In this document: positions 40,161 to 64,000 of the stretch, piece by piece | Layout: every line of letters begins with the position of its first letter | Position numbering within the stretch: the first letter of the stretch is position 1 | Assembly (NCBI GenBank): GCA_950097015.1 | Contig: CATNEN010000033.1 | Coordinates: forward strand, 3,534,001 to 3,598,000 | Length of the DNA: 64,000 bases | Source of the DNA: Macrostomum hystrix | Lineage: Eukaryota > Animalia > Platyhelminthes | Reading direction: 5' to 3' | Notes under the pieces: generated by a model | Seen by the model: only the letters and a program-made list of their open reading frames with translations | Databases searched by the model: none | What the model was told of the DNA's origin: nothing | Made by a program: the position numbers and the translations under genes

Positions 40161-40953
40161 AGGGAAGAGAAAAGAGAGGACAGAGGAGATGTAAGGGGAG
40201 AAAGGCGCACAAGAGGGGAGGAGAGAAAGGTAGAGAAGCAGAGGTGAGAAAGGTAGGGAAGAGGAGGGGAGAAAGGTACAGAAGAGGAGGGGAGAAAGGT
40301 ACAGAAGGAGAGGTGAGAAAGGTACAGAAGGAGAGGGGAGAAAGGTACAGAAGGAGAGGTGAGAAAGGTACACTAAGGAGAGGTGAGAAAGGTACAGAAG
40401 GAGAGGGGAGAAAGGTACAGAAGGAGAGGTGAGAAAGGTACACTAAGGAGAGGTGAGAAAGGTACAGAAGGAGAGGTGAGAAAGGTACAGAAGGAGAGGG
40501 GAGAAAGGTACAGAAGGAGAGGTGAGAAAGGTACAGAAGGAGAGGTGAGAAAGGTACACTAAGGAGAGGTGAGAAAGGTACAGAAGGAGAGGTGAGAAAG
40601 GTACAGAAGGAGAGGGGAGAAAGGTACAGAGGAGGAGGGGAGAAAGGTACAGAAGGAGAGGTGAGAAAGGTACAGAGGAGGAGGGGAGAAAGGTACAGAG
40701 GAGGAGGGGAGAAAGGTTCAGAAGAGGAGGGGAGAAAGTTACAGAAGGAGAGGTGAGAAAGGTACAGAAGAGGAGGTGAGAAAGGTACAGAAGGAGAGGG
40801 GAGAAAGGTACACTAAGGAGAGGGGAGAAAGGTACAGAAGGAGAGGTGAGAAAGGTACAGAGGAGGAGGGGAGAAAGGTACAGAAGAGGAGGGGAGAAAG
40901 GTTCAGAAGAGGAGGGGAGAAAGGTACAGAAGAGGAGGGGAGAAAGGTACAGA
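40161..40953. repeat. 23-bp minisatellite (GAGAAAGGTACAGAAGGAGAGGT/G), ~30 copies, in SPOP intron
   Basis: Direct inspection; degenerate at the left end. Confidence 0.93.
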
Positions 40954-41780: not shown

Positions 41781-43140
41781 AGAGTGCAGGCACTGAGGGG
41801 TGGGAGAGTGCAGGCACAGAGGGGTGGGAGAGTGCAGGCACAGAGGGGAGGGAGAGTGCAGGCACTGAGGGGTGGGAGAGTGCAGGCACAGAGGGGAGGG
41901 AGAGTGCAGGCACAGAGGGATGGGAGAGTGCAGGCACAGAGGGATGGGAGAGTGCAGGCACAGAGGGATGGGAGAGTGCAGGCACAGAGGGATGGGAGAG
42001 AACAGGCACAGAGGGGAGGGAGAGTGCAGGCACAGAGGGATGGGAGAGAACAGGCACAGAGGGGAGGGAGAGTGCAGGCACAGAGGGGAGGGAGAGTGCA
42101 GGCACAGAGGGGAGGGAGAAGGCAGGCACAGAGGGGAGGGAGAAGGCAGGCACAGAGGGATGGGAGAGAACAGGCACAGAGGGGAGGGAGAGTGCAGGCA
42201 CAGAGGGGAGGGAGAGTGCAGGCACAGAGGGGAGGGAGAGTGCAGGCACAGAGGGGTGGGAGGGAGAGTGCAGGCACAGAGGGGAGGGAGAAGGCAGGCA
42301 CAGAGGGGAGGGAGAGTGCAGGCACAGAGGGGAGGGAGAGTGCAGGCACAGAGGGGAGGGAGAAGGCAGGCACAGAGGGGTGGGAGAGAACAGGCACAGA
42401 GGGGAGGGAGGGAGAGTGCAGGCACAGAGGGGAGGGAGAAGGCAGGCACAGAGGGGAGGGAGAAGGCAGGCACAGAGGGGAGGGAGAGTGCAGGCACAGA
42501 GGGGAGGGAGAAGGCAGGCACAGAGGGGTGGGAGAGAACAGGCACAGAGGGGAGGGAGGGAGAGTGCAGGCACAGAGGGGAGGGAGAAGGCAGGCACAGA
42601 GGGGTGGGAGAGTGCAGGCACAGAGGGGAGGGAGAGAACAGGCACAGAGGGGAGGGAGAGTGCAGGCACAGAGGGGAGGGAGAGTGCAGGCACAGAGGGG
42701 AGGGAGAGTGCAGGCACAGAGGAGAGGGAGAGTGCAGGCACAGAGGGGAGGGAGAGTGCAGGCACAGAGGAGAGGGAGAGTGCAGGCACGGAGGGGAGGG
42801 AGAGAACAGGCACAGAGGGGAGGGAGAAGGCAGGCACAGAGGGGAGGGAGAAGGCAGGCACAGAGGGGAGGGAGAGTGCAGGCACAGAGGGGAGGGAGAA
42901 GGCAGGCACAGAGGGGAGGGAGAGGGCAGGCATAGAGGGGAGGGAGAGGGCAGGCACAGAGGGGTGGGAGAAGGCAGGCACAGAGGGGAGGGAGAGGGCA
43001 GGCACAGAGGGGAGGGAGAAGGCAGGCACAGAGGGGAGGGAGAGTGCAGGCACAGAGGGGAGGGAGAAGGCAGGCACAGAGGGGAGGGAGAGGGCAGGCA
43101 TAGAGGGGAGGGAGAGGGCAGGCACAGAGGGGAGGGAGAG
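41781..43140. repeat. 24-bp minisatellite (GGGAGAGTGCAGGCACAGAGGGGA), ~55 copies, in SPOP intron
   Basis: Direct inspection; occasional 28-bp variants shift the apparent ORF frames. Confidence 0.95.
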
Positions 43141-50221: not shown

Positions 50222-50313
50222 AGCGTTTGTTCATAAATTTTTAGCCTAATGCACTGAACTTTTCATTCACTAGACCATATTGACTAACGTATAGTCTTGT
50301 TTTCAGCCTTAAA

Positions 50314-51348
50314 ATGGAAAATATCACCGCTGATCAGTGCAGATTTTATGTTTTCATGCGGTCACAGCTCGGTGAAAACGCTATCCAAATTCATACCGAC
50401 CTGGTTCAAGTCATAGCAGGTACCCCTTCGTACCGCACCGTCGCCCGTTGGATTGAATCAATCAGCGCTGGTCGAAGCTCCATGAACGACAGTCCTCGTT
50501 CTGGAAGGCCCATCGCATCCGTGACCGAGCAGAACATTGTGGCTGTGCGATAGCTGGTGGACACATCCTAATATCACTGTTGCCCTAATTAGCCAGACAA
50601 TCAGAATTTCTGATGGCAGTGTCCGAACCATCCTGCATGATCATCTTGGCCTTTGCAATTGGTCACGGCTCGTTGAATGCCTCGCGCACTCACTGCAGAA
50701 CAGAAGCAGGAGAGTGTTCGACGCAGCCAAGAATTTCTGCATCGCTTCGATGAAGGTGGCACTAAGCGACTCACTGATGTCGTTACTGGAGACGAGAAGT
50801 GGTTTTTCTACTTCCAAGTGCCCCACAAGAACCAAAGCAAGGTTTGGATTGGTGCTGATGAAGACCGTCCAACCGTTCTGCGCCCTGGGTTTCGCTCACG
50901 GAACCAGATGTTTTTCTCGTATTTCTCGTATTCTCGTATTTCTCGGCATCACTGGGCCAGTGGCAGTTGTTATGGTGCCGAATGGGCAGAACATCAATGC
51001 CACATTCTATACTGCAGTATAGTATACTATACATATCTCTACTATACTGCAAGGTTTTGCCTAAAGTCGTGGTTGTAGTCACAGAAAAGCAGCCAACCCG
51101 CCTCCAAAGTGGCAGAATTCACCTGCACCACGACAACGCTTCCGTTCCAGCCACACTGCGGACATGACAACGAGCTTTTTTCCGACAACAAGCTTAAGGT
51201 CATACCGCACCCACCATACAGTCCCGACGTCTCTCCCTGCGACTTCTGGGCCTTCTCAAAGCTGACCGAAAGCATGGCCGGATGCCATTTTCAGCGGTCT
51301 CAAGACCTGGCTCGCCGCAGCAATTCAGAGCTACGAGGGTTACGTTAG
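50314..51348 (+). pseudogene. Mariner (DD34D-type) transposase, disrupted
   Basis: Fragments with HTH (SYRTVARW..PRSGRP), VTGDEKWFFY, HLHHDNA and HPPYSPDVSPCDFWAF. In-frame stop at ~50551 and several frameshifts. Confidence 0.93.
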
Positions 51349-53143
51349 TCAATATGCTCTAGTAAATTAAAAGTTCAGTGCATTGGGCTAAAAATTATAA
51401 ACAAACGCAATATATGATTTTTGTTCTTGAACAAAAAATTGTCGCTTTTCAAAGTTAATCTAGAAAGTTATGGGCCAGTTGCCAAAACTTTTTGTGCACC
51501 CCTCGTATATACTCAGCGTACATGCGCATGCGGCCTGCTATGCAAAGTAGGAACAAGGGTTACAAGACGAATAGAGTTAAAGACAACCGATCTTTGACTA
51601 ATCATCTTTCTGCTCAATATATAGTTTCTCTCTCTAAGGACATTCAAAATAAGAAAGCGGCAATCAAAACGAGAATTAGGAAGGCAAAACAATCTAACGA
51701 TCAAACAGTCAAATATTTTTATTTACAGTATATGTAATCATTTTTGCACGACTCCTTTTTACCACCTCTTGGTAACGCCTGAACCCTCCCTTCCTGCGTA
51801 TATGCTCGCATAATTCTAAACGCAGTTGCAATCGGCACTTGCAGCCGTTGCAGGATGGCTGCTGAGGCTTTTAGTGTTGCCCCTGCGCTTTAACTGTCTA
51901 TTTCCCATATAAGTTTCAACGCTGAATTTCCAGTATTCTAGGAGTCGAAATGACACACACACACAGACACACAGACAAACAACACGTGAACATAAGCATA
52001 TATATATATAGAAATGCTTTAGTAGTTCAACACTCGTTATCGTATTAGCCTGGACGCTTTACCATAGACTATTTCACTTTTTCGACGGTCGGTCTTCCAC
52101 TATCTGAGCTCTCCGGTCCTGGCATCTTGTTACAAGTGGGTAGGGTTTCGGGCTGGCGCGAGAGGGTCTGCAAAATGCGTCTTTTGTTCTCCTGTTGGCT
52201 GGAGCGAACGTGTGACAGAGGGATAAGGCTGGGGTGAAGCAAGATTTTATCGATCAAGAAAAAGAGCATGTGCATGTGCAGAGGACAGAGAGAGAGGTGT
52301 AAGATGTTAAGAAGAATGTTTTGACCTAGACAAAACATTAAATTTGTTTGTCACAGACGTTTTTCGTCTTACCAGCCAATTTTGCAGACACAAAAGTTTA
52401 AGCCTACACAACAAGCCTCTTCCTTAGGGGCTCATACATGCTCCTTTGTTAGTTAAAGCTTTTGAAGCCTAGACAGTCGAAAGAGCTTTCCAATGCGGTA
52501 CGTTATCCTGATTCTGTGCTTTTATGTATATTTTATGCATCTACCTATCTTATCATAGTATTTTCGAAAAACTAAATTTAGTAAAACCGATTTACTATAA
52601 CTATAAGTGGTGACTTTTGCATTGGTCTATATGTCGCTGCTCGTACAGAGGGTGCAGGCCCTCACCGAAAATAATCGGCATAAAATTCGCGAACTGTTCC
52701 GAATTCGACACGAACTCAATTTTAGGTTAGTCAGTTTCTGATTTCGTATATCTCGAAATCGGCTGCAGACAGGATTTTCTGATTAGCAAAATAGTTTCAT
52801 AAATCCATCTTCAATTATACCTTCTCCATAATTTTTTCGGTTTTTCTGATTTTTCACCCACCTTAATTGTACTTAATTAAGTCCATCATCTTTGCAGATA
52901 AGTGAAAAGCAGTCTTCATCAAATGCGAAGACTGATATTGTATCATTTTGGAGGGGTTTTTAGAGGTATACCAATCAAGCCTGATTGTTGCACGATTCAA
53001 ATGTCTATGGCCGAAACAAACGCTAGAGGCCTGACATTCAAAGCTATATTTAGCACTGCATAACGTATAACGCAAGCAATAAAAGCAACATTAGAAGCAA
53101 CAGCAGTTAAGGCAGTATGCCTCAGTTACCTATTTCTTATGCC

Positions 53144-54507
53144 TCATGGCTTATTACTAATGTGTACGTGAAATTGGCAGTTGTAGAAAGTACCAGAAAT
53201 CGCAGAAGCAAGCGTCTGCTGCGTCTCCAAACTGCGCCCGACGACGGCTATTGGCTGCTCAGTATCAGCAGTCTGTGCACTGTTCGCTAACTGCGTATCG
53301 GCTGGTACCAGCTCGGAGTCATCAGAGCCGACCGTAGTTACACGCCGGGCTCCATCGGGCGACTCTGTAGCAGCGATTTTAGCCCCTCCGATGGAACTGA
53401 TTGTTGTCGACAGTGCAACCATCTCCCCATCGCGCTTTCTGCTGTGCCGAATGTACCTTTCCACTGAGCTCTCGCTTTTGTGTCCCGTAACTGCGCTGAT
53501 ATCCCGCAGGGAGACTCCAGCCGCATTCAACTCGGTTTGCCAATGTAACTCGAAGACAATGCCCAGTATAGGCTTTGCTTAGTTTGGCCGCTTCTGAGAT
53601 GACACGCATCAAGTTTCCGAGTGTGTTGACGCCGAGTACCTGCTTAGCGAAATACCAGGAGTCGGCTAGCCCTCGCAATCTAGGACGTAGGAACAGCAAA
53701 GAGCTTGGCACCCCTTCTCTGCTCTCTTCGATCTTCTTCAGGTAGAGATCCACACACTCATAGGGACATCTGCTTTCAAACGTTTCAACAAGCACGCTCT
53801 GCTTTCGATCTTCTGAAGTCCGCGTCTCTAAACTTCCACGGACATTTTTGGTCTCCATAGGTGCCAGTCTAAATGCACGTCGCCCATCGATTGTATATCT
53901 CTGAATGGCATCTACCGTCAGCTTACGGAACCATTCCCGACCTCGCAGTCCAAAGTGAAATGCCAACACAAAGTACATTTCCTGTTGTAATTTTACCGGT
54001 GTACTCCTGTCAAAGTAGACGCGCAATTTCTCTAGGTCTGCTTTCTCGACTGCACAAAACTGCTTCACCGAGCCACCTTCCTGGATGAACTTGGCAGCTG
54101 TAGCTTTCAGTTGTAGGTTGGCCTTCACAAAGCGTTGATCTTCAATTATGTTTAATCCACGTACGCGAAGTAAATAGCGGTACAAACCGGCGCGAGCAGT
54201 AACCAGAGAGGCAGGGGCATAGTATCCACAGTCGACCTTGCGCATAAAAGCGTAGAATATGCGCAGAGCAGTAACCAACTGTTGGATGTCGGCAGTCTCG
54301 AGATTGACCGAGTAGTTCTTGCTTGAGAGCACCTCTTGAAATTTTCGAACTGCCCATTGCTCTTGCTTCAGAACGGATTTCGGTGTGTTGTCAAACTGCA
54401 TCAGATCCATTTCATTGAGAAGAGCTTGCTCTGTATCCTCTCCGCAAAAAAAGCTCCTCCAGTGCGCCACAATCCAGCTGGGCTAGATCATCAATCATGT
54501 CCTGCAT
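53144..54507 (-). pseudogene. Crypton-like tyrosine recombinase A (family 1), two +1 homopolymer frameshifts
   Basis: Catalytic motifs HFGLRGRE (R), TKN (K), GHCLR (HxxR), TGHK (H) and ERY (Y). Removing one base at 54446-54452 and one at 53536-53538 gives one ORF, MQDMIDDL...HCLRVTLATELNAAG...TFYNCQF. Confidence 0.88.
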
Positions 54508-54599
54508 AACCCCCTCGCGTTGAATGCGCTCGCTAATCTCGGTGGCAGAAGCGCCGACAACGTCGCCCTGCGACATGTGCAGAAGACCTATTGGCACAC

Positions 54600-55010
54600 C
54601 AGTAGAAGCCTCGTAGATCCTTCAGCGCAGTGTAGCGCTCTCCATTTTTGTTCCGGGCCTCCATTACAAAATATTTCAGCTGGTAGTTCAGGTCACATTT
54701 GCTACCATCCTCCAGCTCGGCGAGAACCATAAGTGACTGGCCTCCACACGTCGACCAGATACGCTTCTTCTCGTCATGCCACTCGCGGAAGACTTGAAAG
54801 GCCCACTGCGCCTTTTTTCTTGGTGGTCGTCGGCACGGTCTCTTCAATGTGTCTGGCAATTTCATTCTCCGAAAGTTGCTCGAACCGGCCAGTGAGAGCG
54901 GCTTCATTAGGTCCAGCGTTATTCCCGGGCTCCAGGATGAAATCCAGCAGGTCCGGTGAAATCTCCATGTCCGGGGCTTCAACAATAACTACAGCAGAGA
55001 TGTCACCCAT
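54600..55010 (-). pseudogene. N-terminal fragment A' of a family-2 Crypton-like recombinase
   Basis: RFEQLSENEIARHIEETVPTTTKKK|AQWAFQVFREW...DLNYQLKYFVMEARNKNGERY aligns by eye with the N-termini of C and D. Frameshift in the A6 run at 54813-54818. Similarity stops near 54600; no catalytic domain follows. Confidence 0.75.
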
Positions 55011-55143
55011 CTTCGGTAGCAAACTCCACACAAAAGAAGTTATTTTTTTCTGATCTTACACAGCATATTCGGCTTTATAGAACTTTACGAGGGTCACTCA
55101 GAAAGTCTTTAGCCTGAACAAGAAAACAGCAACTAAAAAACCA

Positions 55144-56204
55144 TTACAACTGCTCAAAGTACTCTCCCCCCGCATTGATACAGGCTTGCATCCTGTGGAA
55201 CCAGCTGTCGAAGCACTGCCGCCAATCCTCATCCCGGAGCTCCCCGATGACGTCTTTGAACTCATTCACAGCTTCTTCCGGCGAAGAAAAAATCTGGCCC
55301 TTTAATATCTCCTTGCACTTCGGGAATAAAAAAAGTCGCACGGTGCCAGGTCTGGACTGTACGCAGGGTGAGTCATCAGCTGGACACCACAGTCGGCCAG
55401 AAACTCGAGAGTTTGAGCTGCCATGTGCGCACTGGCATTGTCGTGCTGCAGAAGCACCCCACGCATTCCGCACCTTGGGCGCCTCTGGCTCACAGCAGAA
55501 AAAACTTTGGGCAGGCAAACCGTTGTGTACCAGTCAGCGGTGACTGTCCGGCGATCTTCCAGTGAAACGGAAGCCACATGTCCAGTGCGCATGAAGAAGC
55601 AGGCCGCCATCTGCTTGCCGACACTCCGGTTGCGTCGAAACTTGGTTGGGCTGTCCTCGTCTCTGAAGGTCCACATGGATGACTGGCGCTTGTTTTCGGG
55701 GTCGTATTGATAAATCCAGGTCTCATCTCCCGTGAGGATGTCCCAGATACGCCGGCTGGTCCCAGATTCGAATTTCTGCAGCATAAATCGGCACCAAGCC
55801 ACCCGGGTGTCCCTCTGCTCGTCCGACAGCTGATGGGGGATCCACCGGGAAGCCAGCTTCCGCACTCCGAGGTGTTCGTGCAGAATGGTGTGCACACTCC
55901 CCGATCCAATGCCCATCTCCTGCTGAATCTGCTGGTAGGTCACTCGCCGGTCAGCGTCAATCATGCTGGACACATCGCAGATATTTTCTGGGATCACTGC
56001 GTCGCAGGGTCTCCCGGATCGATGCTCATCTTCGAGGCTTTCTCGACCTCGGCGAAACTCAGCGAACCAGTTTTTGACGGTTGCGTATGAAGGACACAGA
56101 TGAGCGAAAACGTCTTGTAAAGTTTGAAATGAATCGGCCGGCGACTTGCCTTGCTTGAAATGCAAGTACATCATAGCTCTGAAGTCACGATTTTCCAGCT
56201 TCAT
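55144..56204 (-). CDS. Mariner DD34D transposase, one -1 frameshift in a T7 run
   Basis: ATG at 56204 (MKLENRDF). Motifs WIPHQL, TGDETW, HDNA, YSPDLAPCDF. The C-terminus FPK...GGEYFEQL continues in another frame after 55328-55334. Confidence 0.92.
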
Positions 56205-56429
56205 TGACCAACTTCCCCACTCAGACCCAATAATCATGATTGTTCAACGGTAGACGGATGTCTATGGCCACGCCAGGCCACGCCAAACAGATTGGCCTTT
56301 TTGACTTTATTTTAGGCAAAAACGAATTGAAACGATTTGAAACAATTAGCGCAACTGAAACAGTAACGCAACTGACAGCAGCATGTGCTGCACTCCCTCT
56401 GTCCATTGTCAAAATACAGATGCAGATGC

Positions 56430-57838
56430 TCAGTGGGGCTCCTGGGGCGGTCCGATCGTGAAAGTGCAGTTGGTGAAACTGCAGTCACCAAATACCGCAG
56501 CGTAGTTGCGGCCCGTAACGCTGACGGCTCTGTTGCTCACGTTGCTAGTCGCACTTGACACCACCCCTGGGGCGGGCTCCGATTCGCCCTCCACATGCCG
56601 GACCAGTGCGTCGCTCACAGACGTTGCCAGATCCCTCATCGTGCGATCTCGCTTGCGTGACAGGTACCATCGCACGGTCGCCTCACTCTGCTGGCCCGTG
56701 ATGCTCATGATGTCATTGATGGTGAATCCGGCGTCCCGCAGATCTGCGATCCGCGTCACGCGGATGCAATGATTGGTGTACCGCTTAAACAATGTGCAGA
56801 CCCGACTGAGGCGCTGCATCAGGGAGCCCAGCCAGTTGATCCCGCGCGTCTGCTTCGCCGAATACACGACCTGACAGTTCTTGTTGGGCATTGGCCGGGG
56901 AAAGAAGGTGTCATCCTTCGTCTCAGCTGGCAGGGTTGCGCCGTATAGCTGTAGCAGCTCCAGCTGTTTGCCATAAATCCGCGCCTGCTTCGGTACGTAT
57001 CCCTTCGCCCTGACAGGATCGGCACTCTGGTTCTTGGTGGACAACGGCGGAAGCTCCATGTAGGCGTTACCATCGGCATCCTCCTTGGCGATGAGTAGCT
57101 GCCGTCTCCGTAGTGCCTTCAGATGTTCTTGGCCGCGTTCACCAAGGATGTACAGAAGTGTAAAGAGTACTTCATCTTGCAGCTTCTCCCCGGTGGTGCG
57201 ATCGAAATACTTATGGAGTTTCGCCAGGTCCGCCTCCTCGATAGGCTCAAAGTGCTTCACCGCGCCACCAGCGTTGTTCCAATCGCGCACTTTCACCCGC
57301 AGCATCCTGTTGGACTTAGCAAACTCAGGCGCGCCCACCAGATCGAGGTTCCGTTGAAGGATATGTCGGAAGTACCGCTGAATACCCGCGCGGATACACA
57401 CCAAGGTTGCCGGAGAATACAGTTCGCCATTAGCCTTGCGCAAACGAAAGTAGAATAGTCGAAGGTATTCGTTAATCTCAGATGATTCCATGCTCCTGAG
57501 CCGTTCGGTCGCATGCCCGACACTGGCCATGAAGTCAACAAACTGCTGACCATACTGTGTCATTTGCTCTCTGGTCGTCTTTGGCAACGATTGCACCTCC
57601 GCTTCGTCCATCTCCTTCTCCGCTCCAACTTTCGGAACACCGTCGGGTCCCACCTCCGGTAGGATGACGCCCAGGAGGTGTCGTCGTCATTCTGCCCGGG
57701 ATCTTCCAGGTAGGCTATGAAACGAGAAAGGTCGTCGTCGTCCCTATGATCGGCCGAACTTAGATGCGTCAAGAGTCGCAACTCTGGTGCGGTGACACCG
57801 TTTAAGGCGTCAACCGGTAGATTAGCCCAATTTATCAT
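56430..57838 (-). CDS. Crypton-like tyrosine recombinase B (family 1)
   Basis: Uninterrupted 393-aa ORF from the ATG at 57611, with LGERGQE, TKN, NHCIR, TGQ (H->Q), RWY and C-terminal FTNCTF. A probable N-terminal extension from ATG 57838 needs one frameshift near 57680. Confidence 0.9.
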
Positions 57839-58087
57839 TTGCAAGTTTAAGGCGCTCACTGGTGGTTCAGACTGTTCAGGCTTGGGGCTTCTACTCTTGC
57901 CTTCCTTCCTTCCTTCCATCCTTCCGTCAGCTTTAGCCAATGTTTTTTTGTCTATGGTCCATCCTTCTCCTCTGCCCAGCCAATCCTCACGAACAAGTAG
58001 AGCTATTTTTATACCGTCATTGAGCAACGTTGCTCAATGACGGTTTGTGCAACGGAGGAAATCTTGTCGGGTGCGTTTGTCAATGTT

Positions 58088-58192
58088 GTTGTGTATGCGG
58101 TTGCCGAGATAGACAATAAGAATTTGTCACTCGTCGCTTCGTGACACTCGTGACAATTTCTTATTGTCTATCTCGGCAACCGCATATACAAC
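58088..58192. repeat. Palindrome, 43-bp arms (2 mismatches), 19-nt loop, upstream of recombinase B
   Basis: GTTGTGTATGCGGTTGCCGAGATAGACAATAAGAATTTGTCAC / GTGACAATTTCTTATTGTCTATCTCGGCAACCGCATATACAAC. Confidence 0.95.
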
Positions 58193-58458
58193 TTACCATT
58201 GTGCAATTGAACGGCGCAAGGGGTGAACTGACTTTGGCTCACTGCAGTGGACTCAAAAGTAACTGCTTCTGTTTGAAAATTTAGCTATAAGACTTTTAAA
58301 AGGTGGTCTTTACCATAGACAAATTTCATGCTTCTGCGTCTCGTGGATCATACTCAGGCTAAAGACTTTCTGAGTGACCCTCGTATAGCCAATAGTCTAT
58401 GACTGAGGCTTAGTCTCATTTAGTCCCACTTGGTCGAGTCGTGCGGCAATTAAATATT

Positions 58459-58575
58459 ATAATCCCCACTTGAAATCGTAGTCTATGGCATAGAACGACT
58501 GAGGACTGCGTTTCTTGGCCGAGGCGAAGCCGAGGCCGTTCCTTGGCCAAAGAAACTAAATCAACTGGGGATTAT
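58459..58575. repeat. Imperfect palindrome, upstream of A' once the mariner is removed
   Basis: ATAATCCCCACTTGA / TCAACTGGGGATTAT outer arms and TTTCTTGGCCGAGG / CCTTGGCCAAAGAAA inner arms around GGCGAAGCC. Confidence 0.8.
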
Positions 58576-58845
58576 TTTATACTTAACCTACAAGATATGA
58601 GGGTTCACGCTTGATTCCTAGGCTCTTTCTTTACCAGTGGAATGGCCGTCTATGGCCAAACCTCACTAAAACATGAAGCCTGAGAACTCCAAACGAGGCC
58701 ATTGAACCAGTTCACAGGCCTGAAACGTGGCCAGTGAACATTGTATTTTAAACTTTACTTTATTAAAAGATACCAACAGTAAGAACGTTCAGCGAATCAA
58801 TTTATATTGTTCCTTCGTTCCATTGTTCGCAAGTTCACCAGAAAA

Positions 58846-59871
58846 TCACTCAAACGTGATTTCTACAGTGTTAGCCTCACTGTTGACGATCATACGTATC
58901 TTCTTCTTCGGGGGAACACTGATCTCTTCAGAAACAGGATTCAATGTAGGCTCAATAGACGCGGCTGCTCCTCCGGCGTGCAGAGCGCAGGTCATACGCG
59001 AATGGTCCTGGACGTCCAGCCGTATGTACCTCTCAATTGCGTTCGACGAATGTCCAGTGACTCGGGCTACATCGTCCCTTGCCAGTCCAGCCCGGTGCAG
59101 GGTGCTGGTACACGTCTTCCTCAGAGACTGGTTGGTGAACTTGCCATCCCGTGGACACGGGCTTTTCGCCACAATGGAGTCGAGAGTATGCCGGTCGATT
59201 GGTGCATTCTGGTACCATCTGCCGCTTTTGATAGCTGATTCACTCCGAAACCAAGTAAGAAAGAGGTTCTCATGCTTGCATTGGTCCGGTCGGTAGCCGT
59301 CGTAGATTTTGTAGATGCATGGAAGGCAGCGCGCATGATCCGGGGAGTGCGTCGCCATGACAACCTTCACAGGATGATTCTTTCTTCTTATTCCAGAATT
59401 GTTAGTTTTCATGCTCCGCTCCTCTCTATACACCAACATTTAATTGCCATCGTGTAGTTCGATGCGAATCTATTGGCCTCTCTTCAGACTGTGGAGCTCT
59501 GTTCCACCACGTAGGGCGGAGTTTTTTCCAATGTAGAACACAAGCGTATGCAGCAGCGTCTTGAAAGTCTTGAAAGCAGCGAACAAGAAAGTCTTCAGCA
59601 GATAGTTCCAATCCGATTTATTCCACTCGGCCCGCTCCTTCAGCACCGCAAGACCAGAGCTGTCACCGCGAAGCAGCTTAGTTTGCCTCTCCTGAAACCA
59701 GTCGTCAAATACCTTAAGTGCCCATCGCTCCTTCTTGCGCGTCGATTCCGGCACCGCAGCGTCAATCCTCTCAGCAACCTCGTCATCAGACACTAGAGCA
59801 AATCTCGAAGGCTCTTCTCTCAATTGAACCTCATCCAGCCAGTCAAGAACAAGTTCCAAATCTTCCTCCAT
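58846..59871 (-). pseudogene. Crypton-like tyrosine recombinase C (family 2), decayed
   Basis: VPESTRKKERWALKVF, ALRGG, KTN, NQSLRKT, TGHS, ERY. Two in-frame stops at 59440-59472 and ~80 aa missing near 59570 relative to D. Confidence 0.88.
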
Positions 59872-60129
59872 GTTGAAGAGACTTTGCAACTCTCTCACTG
59901 ATTCTATAAAGTCTGCCTGACTGTCTGTCTCTGCTTCTCAGTGTCCAGTCCTTCCTTTTCTACTTGAAAATTTTAGTGTCTATGGTAAATATGGGGGCTG
60001 CGCCCCCCTACCCCCGCTTTGGAAGCTTTCGCTTCCAATATCTGTAGATTAAGTACTATGTACTTAATAAGTACTATCTACGCGTTATTCTTAGGCCGAG
60101 GCAAACCTTCACAGGATGATTCTTGCTTC

Positions 60130-61078
60130 TGAGGCAGTGTAAAATTAGGTTTTCTTTATCATTTTTAAATTCCCGCCACTTTTCCTCACGCGCTAGCTAA
60201 ATGTCGTTATATCACGCAGTGCTCTTTGTGCGTTATATTGCTCTCAAGTAGAAACCTGCACCCACCCCAATTTCTTTGTGTATATATAGAGAGAAAATAT
60301 AAATGCGATCTTTACCTTGGCTCACCCTTGCCTAACCCTTGCCTCACCCTTGCGCACCCTTGCTCACCTTGCTTAACCGTCCGCTACCTGTTTGACCTAC
60401 TTTACGTTCTATACGTTCTCAACGTTTAGCTCTACATTCGATACAACGAAATATAAGCGATTCCACTTCCAACCTCTATTCCAGTTTCGCTATTAAATAG
60501 ACCGAGTTTCTGAGTTATTTTCCTAATAAAAGGAAACAGTTAAAGATACCTTTGCCTTCCCAACCCTCTCCCAAAGATCTCTCGTCGGCCTTCTTTACCA
60601 AAACCCACCCTATTATATGATCCCTTTGAAATCCCAATATACCGTCCTAAAATCCCGTCCAAAAGTCCACCTGAAGTCTATCTGAAGTTCACCTAAAGTT
60701 ACCTAAATACCCCCTGAAGTCCCTAAAAACTCCGCCTTTATCCCTCATGAGACTGTACTAATCCCGGACCCCATAGAGGAAAGTAAGTGAAAGCGCGAAG
60801 GTCGTTCACCAGGCAACTTTAATCCATCCTGATACGCCCCACGGACTGTGTGTCCCAGATCAGTGACCTTAGCCCTCGTGCCAGCATCAGTAAATTCCGC
60901 TCCCAGTGTTAGTAGCTAGTGTCTTGCCGCTCGGGCATTAGCGCTACCTTAGGTATAACCCGAACAGCGTGGAAAAATACCTACTCTCACCCTCATAAAT
61001 TACGCTACCATCCCCCCCAAATACTCAGCTCACCAATCCCAAATTCAATAAATAGAGAGAGCTGAGAGGTCTGCTACA
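60130..61078. mobile_element. Solo LTR (949 bp)
   Basis: TGAGGCAG...CTGCTACA (TG..CA, imperfect IR), 4-bp TSD CTTC at 60126-60129 and 61079-61082, AATAAA near 61047. Removing it rejoins a 43-nt sequence also found at 59362-59404. Confidence 0.8.
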
Positions 61079-61460
61079 CTTCTTATTCCAGAATTGTTAT
61101 GCAAAGCCTCGGCCTAAGAAGCGCGTCCGAGGTCTTTCTGTCATAGAAACCAAAAGAACAGACAAAGATTATATGCATAAAATCCGATTGCTTATTTTAG
61201 AGACATTTAATGGGCGCCTTCAGAGCGAGGAATCGGTAGTCTGTGGTACAGACTACTTTAATTCCGAGACCATTACATCATATAATGGGCCTCAAACGGC
61301 GCCCATTATATGATATAACGGTCTCGGGACACGAGCAGTTTGTACATAGACTACCAGCATTTATTGTGTATGTGATGCAAATAGAACAGGAAGAAAATAT
61401 AAAACGAAAACCTCAAACTTATTGTCACTCGTTGTCCATGCTTCAAAACGCTTCACGCAC

Positions 61461-62792
61461 TTACTTGAACAGGATTTCAATTTTTGGACCCAAAATGCTG
61501 ATGGACTTCACTCCGTGTCCTATAGGAGACTTAAGAGACTCACCAGAAGCGACCAGCTTACCAGTGGAACCGATTCTTGGGCTTGCTTCTGGAACAGAGA
61601 TGCCTTGCAACGCGCTGGATGCAATCCTAGCCACCTGGGCAGAAGGACCAATGTAGCGTTCAAGCGCAGCGGAACTGTGTCCAGTTACTTTAGAAATCTC
61701 AGGCCTCGACAGTCCAACATCACGCAATGTTGTAGCCCACGTCTTTCGCAGGGTTTGGTTGCTATAGTTTCCACCGGAAGGCGCAGGTAGACCATCCATC
61801 AGTGTGCGAACCACAGAATCGAGAGAGAGGCGTCCGAGGACTTGATTTTGAAACCACTTACCGGCACGAACAGACGTTTCACTCCGAAACCAGGACAGAA
61901 ATAGCTGAGGCTTCGTGCACTGATCTGGGCGCAGACTAACGTAACGTTTGTAGAGACAAATAAGACAACGATAATGATTAGCCGTGTGGTACGCAGTATT
62001 ACGTTTAATAGGTCGATTAAACGTCTTCAATCCGCACGGTCGTGTCTTTGAAACAGTTTGCTCCGCGTACACCAGAACCTCCTCGGAACCTTCAGTCGTC
62101 AGTTGGATTTGTTTGTTGTATTCCAGTTCGTGTAGGTCACGGCCACCTCGAAGTCCAAAGACCTTTCCGACAAGAAAGATTACTGTGACAAGAAGACTTT
62201 TTGGTGAATTGTCACCCAGCACTCCACGATTCCAAAGAGAATCCTCGTCCGCAGCAGCAATCGGCGAGGCACTCTTACACCCGTTGAGATTGCCTTCCTT
62301 AGCAGTCTCCCGCATAGCGGCATCAAGTGCACGTCGGGTTGCGACAAACTCCGCATCCGTCCAAATTGACATAGTGTAGACGTAGTAGTGTATGCTGGAT
62401 CATCGTAATCAGATCCTTAAGAGTTCCCGGGGGAACATCTCGCCATTTTCCTTGCGCACCTCAAAGACGAAAAATTGAAGAAGATGATTTAAATCACTCT
62501 TAGTCAGCTCCTCAATAGGCTTTAACAACATCAAGCCGGTAACTTCTCCTTCAAGTTGCAGTTGATTGCAATTTTCCTTCCAAGTTCTGAACACTTTAAT
62601 TGCCCACTTTTCCTTCGCGTGGGTAGAGTTCGGCAGACTCTCAGCCAGCCTGCGCTTCAAATCGGTCGAATCAAGCAGCTCACCAACACGGCTTGTCGAA
62701 GATAACGATGGACGCATCGCATCAGCAGCAGGTGGATTATCAGATGAATTGAAGAATTCAGAGAAGTCGAAGTCTTCCATAGCGCCAGCCAT
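61461..62792 (-). pseudogene. Crypton-like tyrosine recombinase D (family 2), short compensated frameshift pair
   Basis: The two ORF-track pieces share a frame. Adding one C at 62429-62433 reads FPPGTLKDLITMIQH before returning to SIWTDAEF. Motifs FGLRGG, SKT, NQTLRKT, TGHS, ERY. Confidence 0.88.
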
Positions 62793-63082
62793 TGCAAAAT
62801 GTATTGCCCAAGTACTTGATATAGCACTTAAACAATTTCTTCTCTTAATCGCTCATCTTCTTTTTAGTCTTTCTATGCTGACTGTCTTTTATTCTTAATA
62901 TTAATTTTTTCTATGGCCCGAAAGGATGCTATATGGATGTGCGATATTCAAAACTGTATTGGAAAACTACAAATGAAAGTTTGTCTATGGTTAGAATGTG
63001 GAGGCTTCGCCCCACACCCGCTAGCAGCCGCTGTCGAATAGATGGAATACTCTCCAAAATAGGTAATCTGATTTCATATAAA

Positions 63083-63138
63083 ATAATAGCCTTTTAATAA
63101 GCTGTCTAACCACAGAATGCTTATTAAATGGCTATTAT
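63083..63138. repeat. Palindrome, 20-bp arms (1 mismatch), upstream of recombinase D
   Basis: ATAATAGCCTTTTAATAAGC / GCTTATTAAATGGCTATTAT with a 16-nt loop. Confidence 0.9.
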
Positions 63139-63596
63139 CATATACATAAAGCATGATTTTTTAGTCTATAATGCTCGCAATGTATAACTTTGATGCTTTT
63201 TTCGGGCTTTTTATTTACTGCTTTATGTCTGTGGTCGGGAAATAATGTCCGCAAATGTTTATTTCAGTAGAAATTTAACGATTGAACGATTTAACAGCGC
63301 ATTTAATATCAATAGTAAATTATTAGTATACCTTTTTGCGATCTTGTTGGCCAAAACTGCGATAAATTTGGCCAGCCTGGGATAGACAAAAAAGCACAGA
63401 TTGTACCCTTTTGTCTATGGTTTCCGGCATTCATACTTGCGGTAACAATTTAATTGTTTGTCGGCTTTTTTTGATTGTTGCCGGATTTCAGACGAATGTA
63501 TTTGGCTATCAAAACAAGGAACAACAATAGCAACACGGCGAAAGTGTTTCATAGTCACAAAAAGTTCTTAAGAACAAACCGATCGAATCAATTGTT

Positions 63597-64000
63597 TTAC
63601 TTTCCGTAAAAGTTGAATGTGCAGTTGTGGAACTGACCACCACAGAGGCTTCTCGGCAGGTCTTGGCCGCCCTCGGGTGCTTTCATCAGCTCGCCTCTAT
63701 CAGACCCAGTTGTCACACTTTCGATGGTGGATTCCGCATCGTCGTCAATCTTGGTGACTTTGGACCCATAGGCAGCCAGACAAGCGCTCATTCGGGCCAC
63801 ACAGTCCATGTCTCGCCGCTTGTATACATCCACTGAGCTCGAATTCTTGTGTCCCGTCATTAGTGTAATCGCTTGATTATCGAAACCGGCCTTGGCCAAA
63901 CAGTTCACCTAAGTTTCAGCAGTTGGGTAAGACAGTATTCTTACAGTTTTACTGAAGTGAGTAGGCCATGCGATCTTTACTCACCGTGGTTACTCGCACA
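63597..64000 (-). CDS. 3' end of Crypton-like tyrosine recombinase E (family 1-like) with a 76-nt intron (63909-63984)
   Basis: GTG CGA GTA ACC ACG|gtgagt...ttag|GTG AAC TGT splices to VRVTTVNCLAKAGFDNQAITLMTGHKNSSSVDVY...GGQFHNCTF. The gene continues beyond the window. Confidence 0.85.

Follow-up and report, generated by a model that had tools for sequence, protein, structure and literature searches.

Recombinase genes of the array

We analysed a 64,000-nt stretch (the window) of the Macrostomum hystrix contig CATNEN010000033.1, part of which is occupied by tyrosine recombinase genes of the Crypton type. Coordinates are those of the window. A first reading of the letters (hereafter the original prediction) had described five recombinase genes and one fragment, all on the minus strand, and Pfam, tblastn and the open reading frames (ORFs) agree with it: six recombinase coding remnants lie at 52.9-64 kb, on the minus strand throughout. 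Going down from the window edge, they belong to unit A' (63597-64000), unit E (61177-63145), unit B (58583-61176), a fragment unit (54533-58582), which is split by a mariner transposon that itself contains unit C (56202-58196), and unit D (52944-54470).

A Pfam search of the ORF pieces detected DUF3504 and/or QRICH1 in five units (DUF3504 in D, B and E; QRICH1 in the fragment, C and E) and no other domain; both domains derive from Crypton tyrosine recombinases. The A' piece (63600-63908) returned nothing from Pfam; tblastn aligns A' (ORF 63597-63908) with a Crypton recombinase C-terminus, namely residues 365-458 of the homologue P0009, and its FHNCTFNF tail resembles the tails of C, D and their homologues. 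In the homologue alignment R173, K207, H295 and R298 show little or no variation and the Tyr position is kept, giving the tyrosine recombinase pattern R...K...HxxR...H/W...Y. The His of HxxR is replaced by Gln in type 1 (E and B; the types are defined below), and the second catalytic His by Gln in the clade of C. The C-terminal box with HxxR...H...Y aligns weakly to XerA, and PF00589 is assigned to three homologues (P0006, P0010 and P0011) in precomputed Pfam annotation. The best-preserved units are single-gene elements of about 2 kb (C, 1,995 bp; E, 1,969 bp) without a reverse transcriptase or DDE transposase of their own; the domain is of the DUF3504 type, the host is an animal, and a C-terminal GCR1_C domain is lacking. 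Judged by sequence, the elements are thus Crypton-type transposons, in line with the Crypton-like elements of the original prediction, and they belong to several diverged families; their domains and host agree with CryptonA.

The recombinases fall into two deep types, type 1 comprising E, B and the fragment and type 2 comprising A', C and D. The outside protein closest to E, P0015, is 64% identical to E and 41% identical to B, whereas C and D are 59% and 33% identical to P0001. Within a type, the units reach only 33-47% identity to each other's nearest relatives, and closer relatives were found elsewhere. Since closer relatives exist outside the array than within it, the units represent separate families and not local duplicates, which bears out the earlier view that no recent tandem duplication took place. 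The homology search returned relatives at 29-70% identity in Macrostomum lignano, the source of the closest named proteins, and in many public-assembly contigs of 1.5-2.3 kb, with one gene per contig.

Every copy in the window with a judgeable frame is defective. The coding sequence of C (57838-56430) carries a 2-nt frameshift at 57675-57677. That of D (54470-53144) has a frameshift near 53500 and is truncated at the 5' side, so that unit D is a type-2 Crypton without its 5' region. The coding pieces of B (59871-58846), a degraded type-1 element, have lost about 90 codons and contain in-frame stops. The N-terminal coding sequence of the type-1 fragment (55010-54605) is truncated and fused to D, and the coding sequence of E (62792-61461) is interrupted by two in-frame TGA codons (62400-62411). 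A', the C-terminal part of a type-2 recombinase with its stop at 63597, meets the window edge, and its frame is not judgeable. The frame of E is broken only by the two TGA codons, which are 6 nt apart, and the rest aligns with P0015 over 451 residues in a single frame.

Empty sites of unit C and the ends of the elements

Contigs from four public sequencing runs were aligned to window positions 55000-60999. In runs X1 (depth 714) and X2, mariner contigs join 56201 to 58197, skipping 1,995 bp. The joint is ambiguous by five letters, CAATG on the gene strand, which the empty mariner copies contain a single time and which flank insert C on both sides (58197-58201 and 56202-56206); such a short direct repeat is the hallmark of Cryptons (PMC3212892, PMC9977147). 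This mariner form without unit C is abundant in both runs, and the metagenome run X2 additionally contains a second, different right flank at 56202. Since the X1 and X2 contigs carry the mariner without C, unit C is a mobile type-2 Crypton of 1,995 bp, inserted at the mariner start codon with CAATG on both sides; the empty site that the original prediction had suggested looking for places its ends at CAATG. In other copies of C, 2 nt are missing at 57675/57677, so that the ORF pieces fuse into one frame of 468 codons. Internally deleted derivatives occur in runs X16 and X17, with deletions of 768, 1,086 and 1,096 bp and a few filler letters (56480-57832), and are probably non-autonomous Cryptons. 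With empty sites, a second flank and deletion derivatives, C displays the marks of Crypton mobility; the family is a mobile one, and somewhere in this lineage it probably remains active. Runs labelled with five different organism names contain near-identical copies, as do metagenomes and metatranscriptomes from wastewater, biofilters and outdoor samples; therefore, either the host is a small freshwater animal with a wide distribution or close species have the element in common.

The mariner (55083-58388, minus strand) is a SETMAR-like DDE transposon; its insertion site is a TA in the 5' untranslated region of the fragment unit, and its terminal repeats lie at 55083-55117 and 58354-58388. Its transposase starts with the ATG at 58199-58197, resumes after unit C at 56201 and runs to 55144, with a frameshift near 55305. 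The 5' untranslated region of the mariner contains an inverted motif copy, GTCTATGG (58313-58320), 121 nt before the mariner ATG. In copies without C this region, including GTCTATGG, is contiguous with the transposase; the copy at 58313 is therefore mariner sequence and not part of a Crypton, as had been supposed. A second mariner-like transposase remnant, on the plus strand at 50308-51249 and 25% identical to the array mariner, lies just outside the array, so the one-strand rule stops short of that position.

The left end of C is built around a terminal palindrome (58088-58192) with 43-nt arms, which begins 4 nt past the core. CAATG pairs with a far-side CATTG at the base of a 130-nt hairpin (folding, z = -12.5); the hairpins in general fold strongly in silico (z = -4 to -12.5). 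Just inside the palindrome the right terminus recurs inverted as CATTGACAAAC (58075-58085), with 10/11 positions matching, and a second palindrome follows at 58013-58044.

For E, the ends were located by comparison. Over the 3' region the likeness of E to its relative L084 is about 70%; both contain an identical 22-mer, AAAATAAGCAATCGGATTTTAT, and diverge directly after it, and the contigs L085 and L086 terminate at the same point. The right end of E was therefore placed at 61177, with a conserved right-terminal 27-mer at 61177-61203. On the left, similarity among E, L084/L085 and L086 begins at GTATATGA, the first base of the 5' palindrome (63077-63144). The element (minus strand, 1,969 bp) would thus have TTTAT(G) on either side. 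Its right-terminal nucleotides recur inverted just inside the left palindrome (63051-63077), as they do in L084; over 22-27 nt the match is 22/27 in E and 22/25 in L084, reached in 0/5,000 shuffles each. E also has a 3' hairpin, GTCTATGT...CCACAGAC, at 61239-61351. With an inverted right terminus present just inside the left palindrome, joined ends, whether of a circle or of neighbours, would rebuild a long symmetric site with the crossover in the outer left arm.

A similar organization was observed in distant metagenomic relatives (30-35% protein identity). In nine of the 12 checked, the contig has a long palindrome at its 5' edge; in a separate count, AATG occurs no more than 12 nt upstream in 9/12 such 5' palindromes (P = 6e-8). 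From these comparisons and by analogy to C, each element is predicted to consist of a YWATG core followed by a long palindrome, with the inverted right terminus just inside the palindrome. The direct terminal repeats of 4-6 bp expected of a Crypton are CAATG for C, as given by the empty site, and presumably TTTAT(G) for E.

The remaining ends were assigned in the same manner. The left palindrome of the fragment unit (minus strand) would occupy 58450-58582, with TCTATG-CCATAGAC at its centre (58481-58488). The predicted right end of D (minus strand), ...CCAAAATG at 52944, comes from its alignment with unit C only. The left palindrome of B is degenerate, with perfect 15-nt arms at 61106-61120 and 60088-60102, and its loop has received a 948-bp insertion (60131-61078) flanked by a 5-bp direct repeat, AGAAG. 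The insertion contains short tandem CCTTGCCTCACCCTTGC units and reaches a contig depth of up to 6,800 in X1; because of this very high depth we regard it as a high-copy repeat. The loop further contains (61079-61099 plus 60104-60130) a near-exact copy of 43 nt of the coding sequence of B itself (59362-59404, TNNSGIRRKNHPVKV), in which 21 nt are identical and 27 nt contain one mismatch. Templated repair at the hairpin might be the source of this copy, although this is a guess.

Positions and possible role of the GTCTRTGG motif

The 8-mer GTCTRTGG occurs 12 times in the window, always between 52062 and 63420; shuffled windows contain 2.2 +/- 1.45 copies, and 0/100 shuffles reach 12. The original prediction had placed it 134-215 bp past five stops, and these distances were reproduced: 134 nt for D (53003-53010), 163 nt for C (56260-56267), 191 nt for B (58648-58655), 215 nt for E and 177 nt for A' (63413-63420). 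It had also placed the motif before each visible ATG, which holds exactly for C (57950-57957) and B (59978-59985), whereas E and the fragment have forms with one mismatch, CCATAGAA (62909-62916) and TCATAGAC (58392-58399). An exact copy of CCATAGAC in E lies at 62983-62990, 198 nt before the ATG. Measured from the ATG, the 5' copy is found at 119 nt in C, 114 in B, 124 in E, 116 in L084, 107 in the M. lignano element L002 and 103 in L001, where it is inverted; the left end lies at a variable distance from it, 155-243 nt (239 nt in C). The 3' copy behaves in the opposite way, lying 58 nt from the right end in C, 62 in E, L084 and L086, and 65 in B, whereas its distance to the stop codon varies across elements from 134 to 281 nt. 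The position is kept in the independent relatives L084/L085, L086, L087, L001 and L002, so the link between the motif and homologous genes holds in these relatives. E, L084 and L002 have long hairpins with the motif at the base.

We read the motif as a conserved internal signal of two positional classes and not as the crossover site. The alternative, in line with the original prediction that the 8-mer marks the conserved element ends, is that GTCTATGG/CCATAGAC is itself both end and crossover site and that the array grows by insertion at it. Several observations lend themselves to this. In L002 the base of the left hairpin is GTCTATGG/CCATAGAC and TCTATGG recurs 147 nt past the stop, like a terminal direct repeat, so that TCTATGG may be the terminal repeat itself in that element; L001 has GTCTATGGTA on either side of the gene; the junction of C, GGTCAATGG, is one base from TCTATGG, and a circle of C would read GGTCAATGGTAAG at its junction, one base off GTCTATGGTAA; and CryptonS elements were reported with common TATGG termini (PMC3212892). 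The empty site speaks differently, as C ends at CAATG with both exact CCATAGAC copies internal, 58 and 239 nt inside. The ends of the E family, TTTAT(G), lie 62 nt beyond the motif. For a forward motif on the gene strand, CTATG is read from the other strand, and insertion there would produce inverted and not direct neighbours. The exact inverted copy, at 58313, is part of the mariner. We therefore consider this explanation improbable as a general account. The specific version of it in which unit C is bounded by GTCTATGG (58320) and CCATAGAC (56260) as 8-bp inverted ends is ruled out by the 56201/58197 joint.

What the internal signal does is suggested by where it occurs. It might be a promoter element of the host lineage that is used by unrelated transposons and has no recombination role, which would be compatible with the account of the array given below. 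The 5' copy lies 103-124 nt from the ATG in two recombinase families from three sources and in either orientation (inverted in L001); the unrelated mariner has its inverted copy at a similar distance and retains it in the X1 and X2 copies; and Cryptons of other hosts lack the motif and contain other upstream words, TTTGAATT and CGCGTTAGCG. A promoter would not readily account for the 3' copy, which tracks the right end and not the stop codon, nor for the long hairpins just mentioned that have the motif at their base. Moreover, the mariner L088, 66% identical and with the same terminal repeat, has only ATCTATGCC at the matching place (the mariner L089 was not alignable at that position), and the mariner copy may be partly inherited chance. 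We regard a pure promoter role as a serious possibility, although on balance we do not favour it. Going by position and conservation, we conclude that the motif is a putative protein-binding signal specific to the host lineage, either a promoter/operator or a recombination-accessory site.

Its restriction to a lineage emerged from a motif scan of relatives (83 loci, 243 kb), in which nearly all real matches were in L001 and L002; with no excess across these loci, a universal Crypton feature was ruled out. A de novo search for shared words upstream of metagenomic relatives yielded TTTGAATT and CGCGTTAGCG, and not the motif. In L005, L007, L014, L015, L018 and L019, metagenomic Cryptons of one sample set, CGCGTTAGCG is located 120-245 nt before the ATG, always in one orientation, and TTTGAATT/AATTCAAA words occur at -50 to -105. 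These words may be the counterpart of CCATAGAC in another host.

Proposed growth of the array and its relation to known systems

The right end of E at 61177 is directly followed by GCATATAATC, the left arm of the degenerate palindrome of B, and the 3' region of B meets GTATAAAATAATCCCC at 58582, the first base of the palindrome of the fragment unit. With the ends as assigned above, E/B and B/fragment are exact end-to-start abutments with no base between them. The fusion of the fragment to D is most simply explained by a deletion across the former junction. Tandems also occur elsewhere. The metagenome contig L013 contains two intact 464-aa recombinases, head to tail and 56% identical, each behind a palindromic module of 130 nt (43-172 and 2136-2264); the modules are 91% identical and bounded by ACAATG...CATTGT, and the similarity between the units begins at the core. 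This suggests exchange of the attachment site between families or its strong conservation. Another metagenome contig, L026, carries three Crypton pieces on the same strand. Among the Logan contigs, circular or tandem forms were sought through terminal overlaps, and none was found in any relative locus checked.

We propose that the locus is a nest of at least five different CryptonA-type transposons, built by core-mediated integration and by accretion at shared attachment sites, and give this reading a probability of about 60%. A circular Crypton copy would recombine with a chromosomal site through a short shared core located at the outer base of the left-end palindrome, namely YWATG (CAATG for C, TTATG for E). 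Integrated elements would keep core-bearing junctions, at which later arrivals of the same or a related family could land in a fixed orientation, and such landings would give the exact E/B/fragment abutments and the common strand; this accretion step is the inferred part of the model, and cross-family compatibility of cores is assumed. The remaining joins would reflect nesting and decay, that is, the mariner in the 5' untranslated region of the fragment, C at the mariner start codon and the deletion fusing the fragment to D. A summary of the Crypton integration model is available (PMC3212892), and integration via a 5-bp core common to terminus and target is documented for CryptonF-1 of Chlamydomonas (PMC9977147).

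The earlier idea that units insert next to one another accordingly applies to E/B and B/fragment, which abut exactly, and not to C, which sits inside the mariner, or to A' and E, which are spaced. Of the proposed cassette-like array, the head-to-tail order and the recombinase of each unit are borne out, whereas array growth is plausible and only partly shown.

A number of observations weigh against the proposed reading. The fragment is joined to D within the coding regions of both, some 230 nt intervene between A' and E, and the junction cores differ (TTTAT/G, GTTAA/G and CAATG). Only C has an empty site; for E, the ends were deduced from where sequences diverge and where contigs stop, and analogy set the ends of B, the fragment unit and D. 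The match of the right terminus of C to its inverted copy is weak alone, being reached in 301/5,000 shuffles. Distant relatives lack the motif (8 forward and 9 inverted copies vs 7.4 expected per strand), as does the one close relative L003. Finally, a 39-kb satellite adjoins the array and other transposon debris is present, so that passive accumulation contributes.

Passive accumulation could in principle explain everything: independent arrivals in a repeat-rich, possibly piRNA-cluster-like region, with one orientation tolerated or selected and no targeting by the recombinases. The neighbouring satellite fits this explanation, as do the mariner, the Tc1-like fragment and the 948-bp high-copy insert within the array, the defects of all judgeable copies, and the fact that mariner and C share a strand without any attachment-site logic. 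Such a trap would hardly be expected to make E/B and B/fragment meet end to start with zero bases between, or to recur as an intact heterologous tandem in the unrelated contig L013, and the mariner-like remnant outside the array lies on the other strand. We consider it unlikely as the sole cause, and return to core-mediated integration with accretion as the preferred reading.

The satellite (8-39229) consists of about 2,300 copies of a 16-nt unit, AGAGGCTGAGATGGAT, with 73% matches; one strand holds nearly all of its purines (GC skew about +0.64). Two other arrays rich in purines follow at 40194-40953 (23/116-nt unit) and 41781-43140 (24-nt unit, 60% G+C). An isolated inverted motif copy, GTCTATGGTAAAG, lies on the minus strand at 52062-52069, outside any recognisable Crypton unit, and belongs to the same 13-mer as found in the mariner 5' untranslated region. 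At the other end of the array, the 3' motif region of A' (63382-63420) comprises CCATAGAC and a degenerate inverted GTCTATCC with a hairpin of 17-nt arms between them. The non-Crypton spacer that separates it from E (63146-63379) starts with CAGGCTGGCCAAA and contains CCACAGAC at 63227-63234. Its start resembles a Tc1-type terminal repeat, for which no partner repeat was found within the window; owing to this resemblance, the interpretation of the spacer as a gene-less mini-Crypton was dropped.

With CryptonA as described (Goodwin et al. 2003; Kojima & Jurka 2011, PMC3212892), the units share the single DUF3504/QRICH1-type tyrosine recombinase gene, the size of about 2 kb, the lack of a DDE transposase and reverse transcriptase, direct repeats of 5-6 bp at both ends in common with the target, and internally deleted non-autonomous derivatives. 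Kojima and Jurka reported no terminal repeats in animal Cryptons and considered their ends undefinable (PMC3212892). Here, in contrast, the ends comprise a YWATG core, a long terminal palindrome and an inverted right terminus, an internal 8-mer is common to several families, and different families form exact head-to-tail arrays. According to the report on CryptonF-1_cRei of Chlamydomonas (PMC9977147), that element is active, its terminus CACCG matches a 5-bp target CAYCG and it is biased towards 5' untranslated regions; comparably, C uses CAATG at a start codon and E lies in the 5' part of another transposon. CryptonF-1_cRei differs in belonging to group F with a GCR1_C domain, and the passages on Cryptons in that report mention no terminal palindrome or arrays. 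MarCry-1_FO of Fusarium is a Crypton fused with a mariner (PMC3212892), and our locus likewise has a Crypton inside a mariner with mariner terminal repeats and a TA duplication as bounds. Unlike in that case, common mariner copies here lack the Crypton, and C in the mariner is therefore a single nested insertion with no sign of a composite mobile family.

Tandem prokaryotic integrative elements and integron attC arrays resemble the locus in their single orientation and in junctions that are hybrid attachment sites. Further likenesses are imperfect palindromes of variable sequence with fixed position and outer boxes, and a crossover, predicted for this locus, at the outer hairpin base. By extension, the long palindrome might serve as the attachment site of these Cryptons, with crossover at the outer base of a hairpin or cruciform (a preformed four-way junction), compatible YWATG cores leading to heterologous trains of one orientation, and CCATAGAC as an accessory site 58-65 nt from the crossover; we put this forward tentatively and think it rather doubtful in its full form. 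In integrons a single platform integrase with an attI site and a common promoter serves recombinase-less cassettes, whereas each unit here has its own recombinase and upstream region, with no platform integrase and no common promoter. The host here is also eukaryotic, unlike those of integrons and prokaryotic islands, and a part for palindrome folding in recombination is conjecture.

Our literature search, with Repbase outside its scope, found no Crypton arrays, hairpin ends or Macrostomum Cryptons, and no defined ends, terminal palindromes, shared internal motif or heterologous trains for animal Cryptons. Within that scope, integration at a 5-bp core is already known, and the shared internal motif, the terminal architecture and the head-to-tail trains are the features that we did not find described.

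Cryptons are, to our knowledge, the least understood class of eukaryotic DNA transposons. The locus supplies an animal Crypton with ends set by an empty site, a terminal architecture (core, palindrome and inverted right terminus) that recurs in distant metagenomic relatives, and evidence for head-to-tail stacking of different families. The attachment site and the accretion idea are now directly testable, and the compact recombinase/site pairs of about 2 kb are candidate tools. If the palindrome indeed acts as the attachment site, these arrays would be a eukaryotic counterpart of integron/attC or tandem-island accretion, made of self-encoding units.

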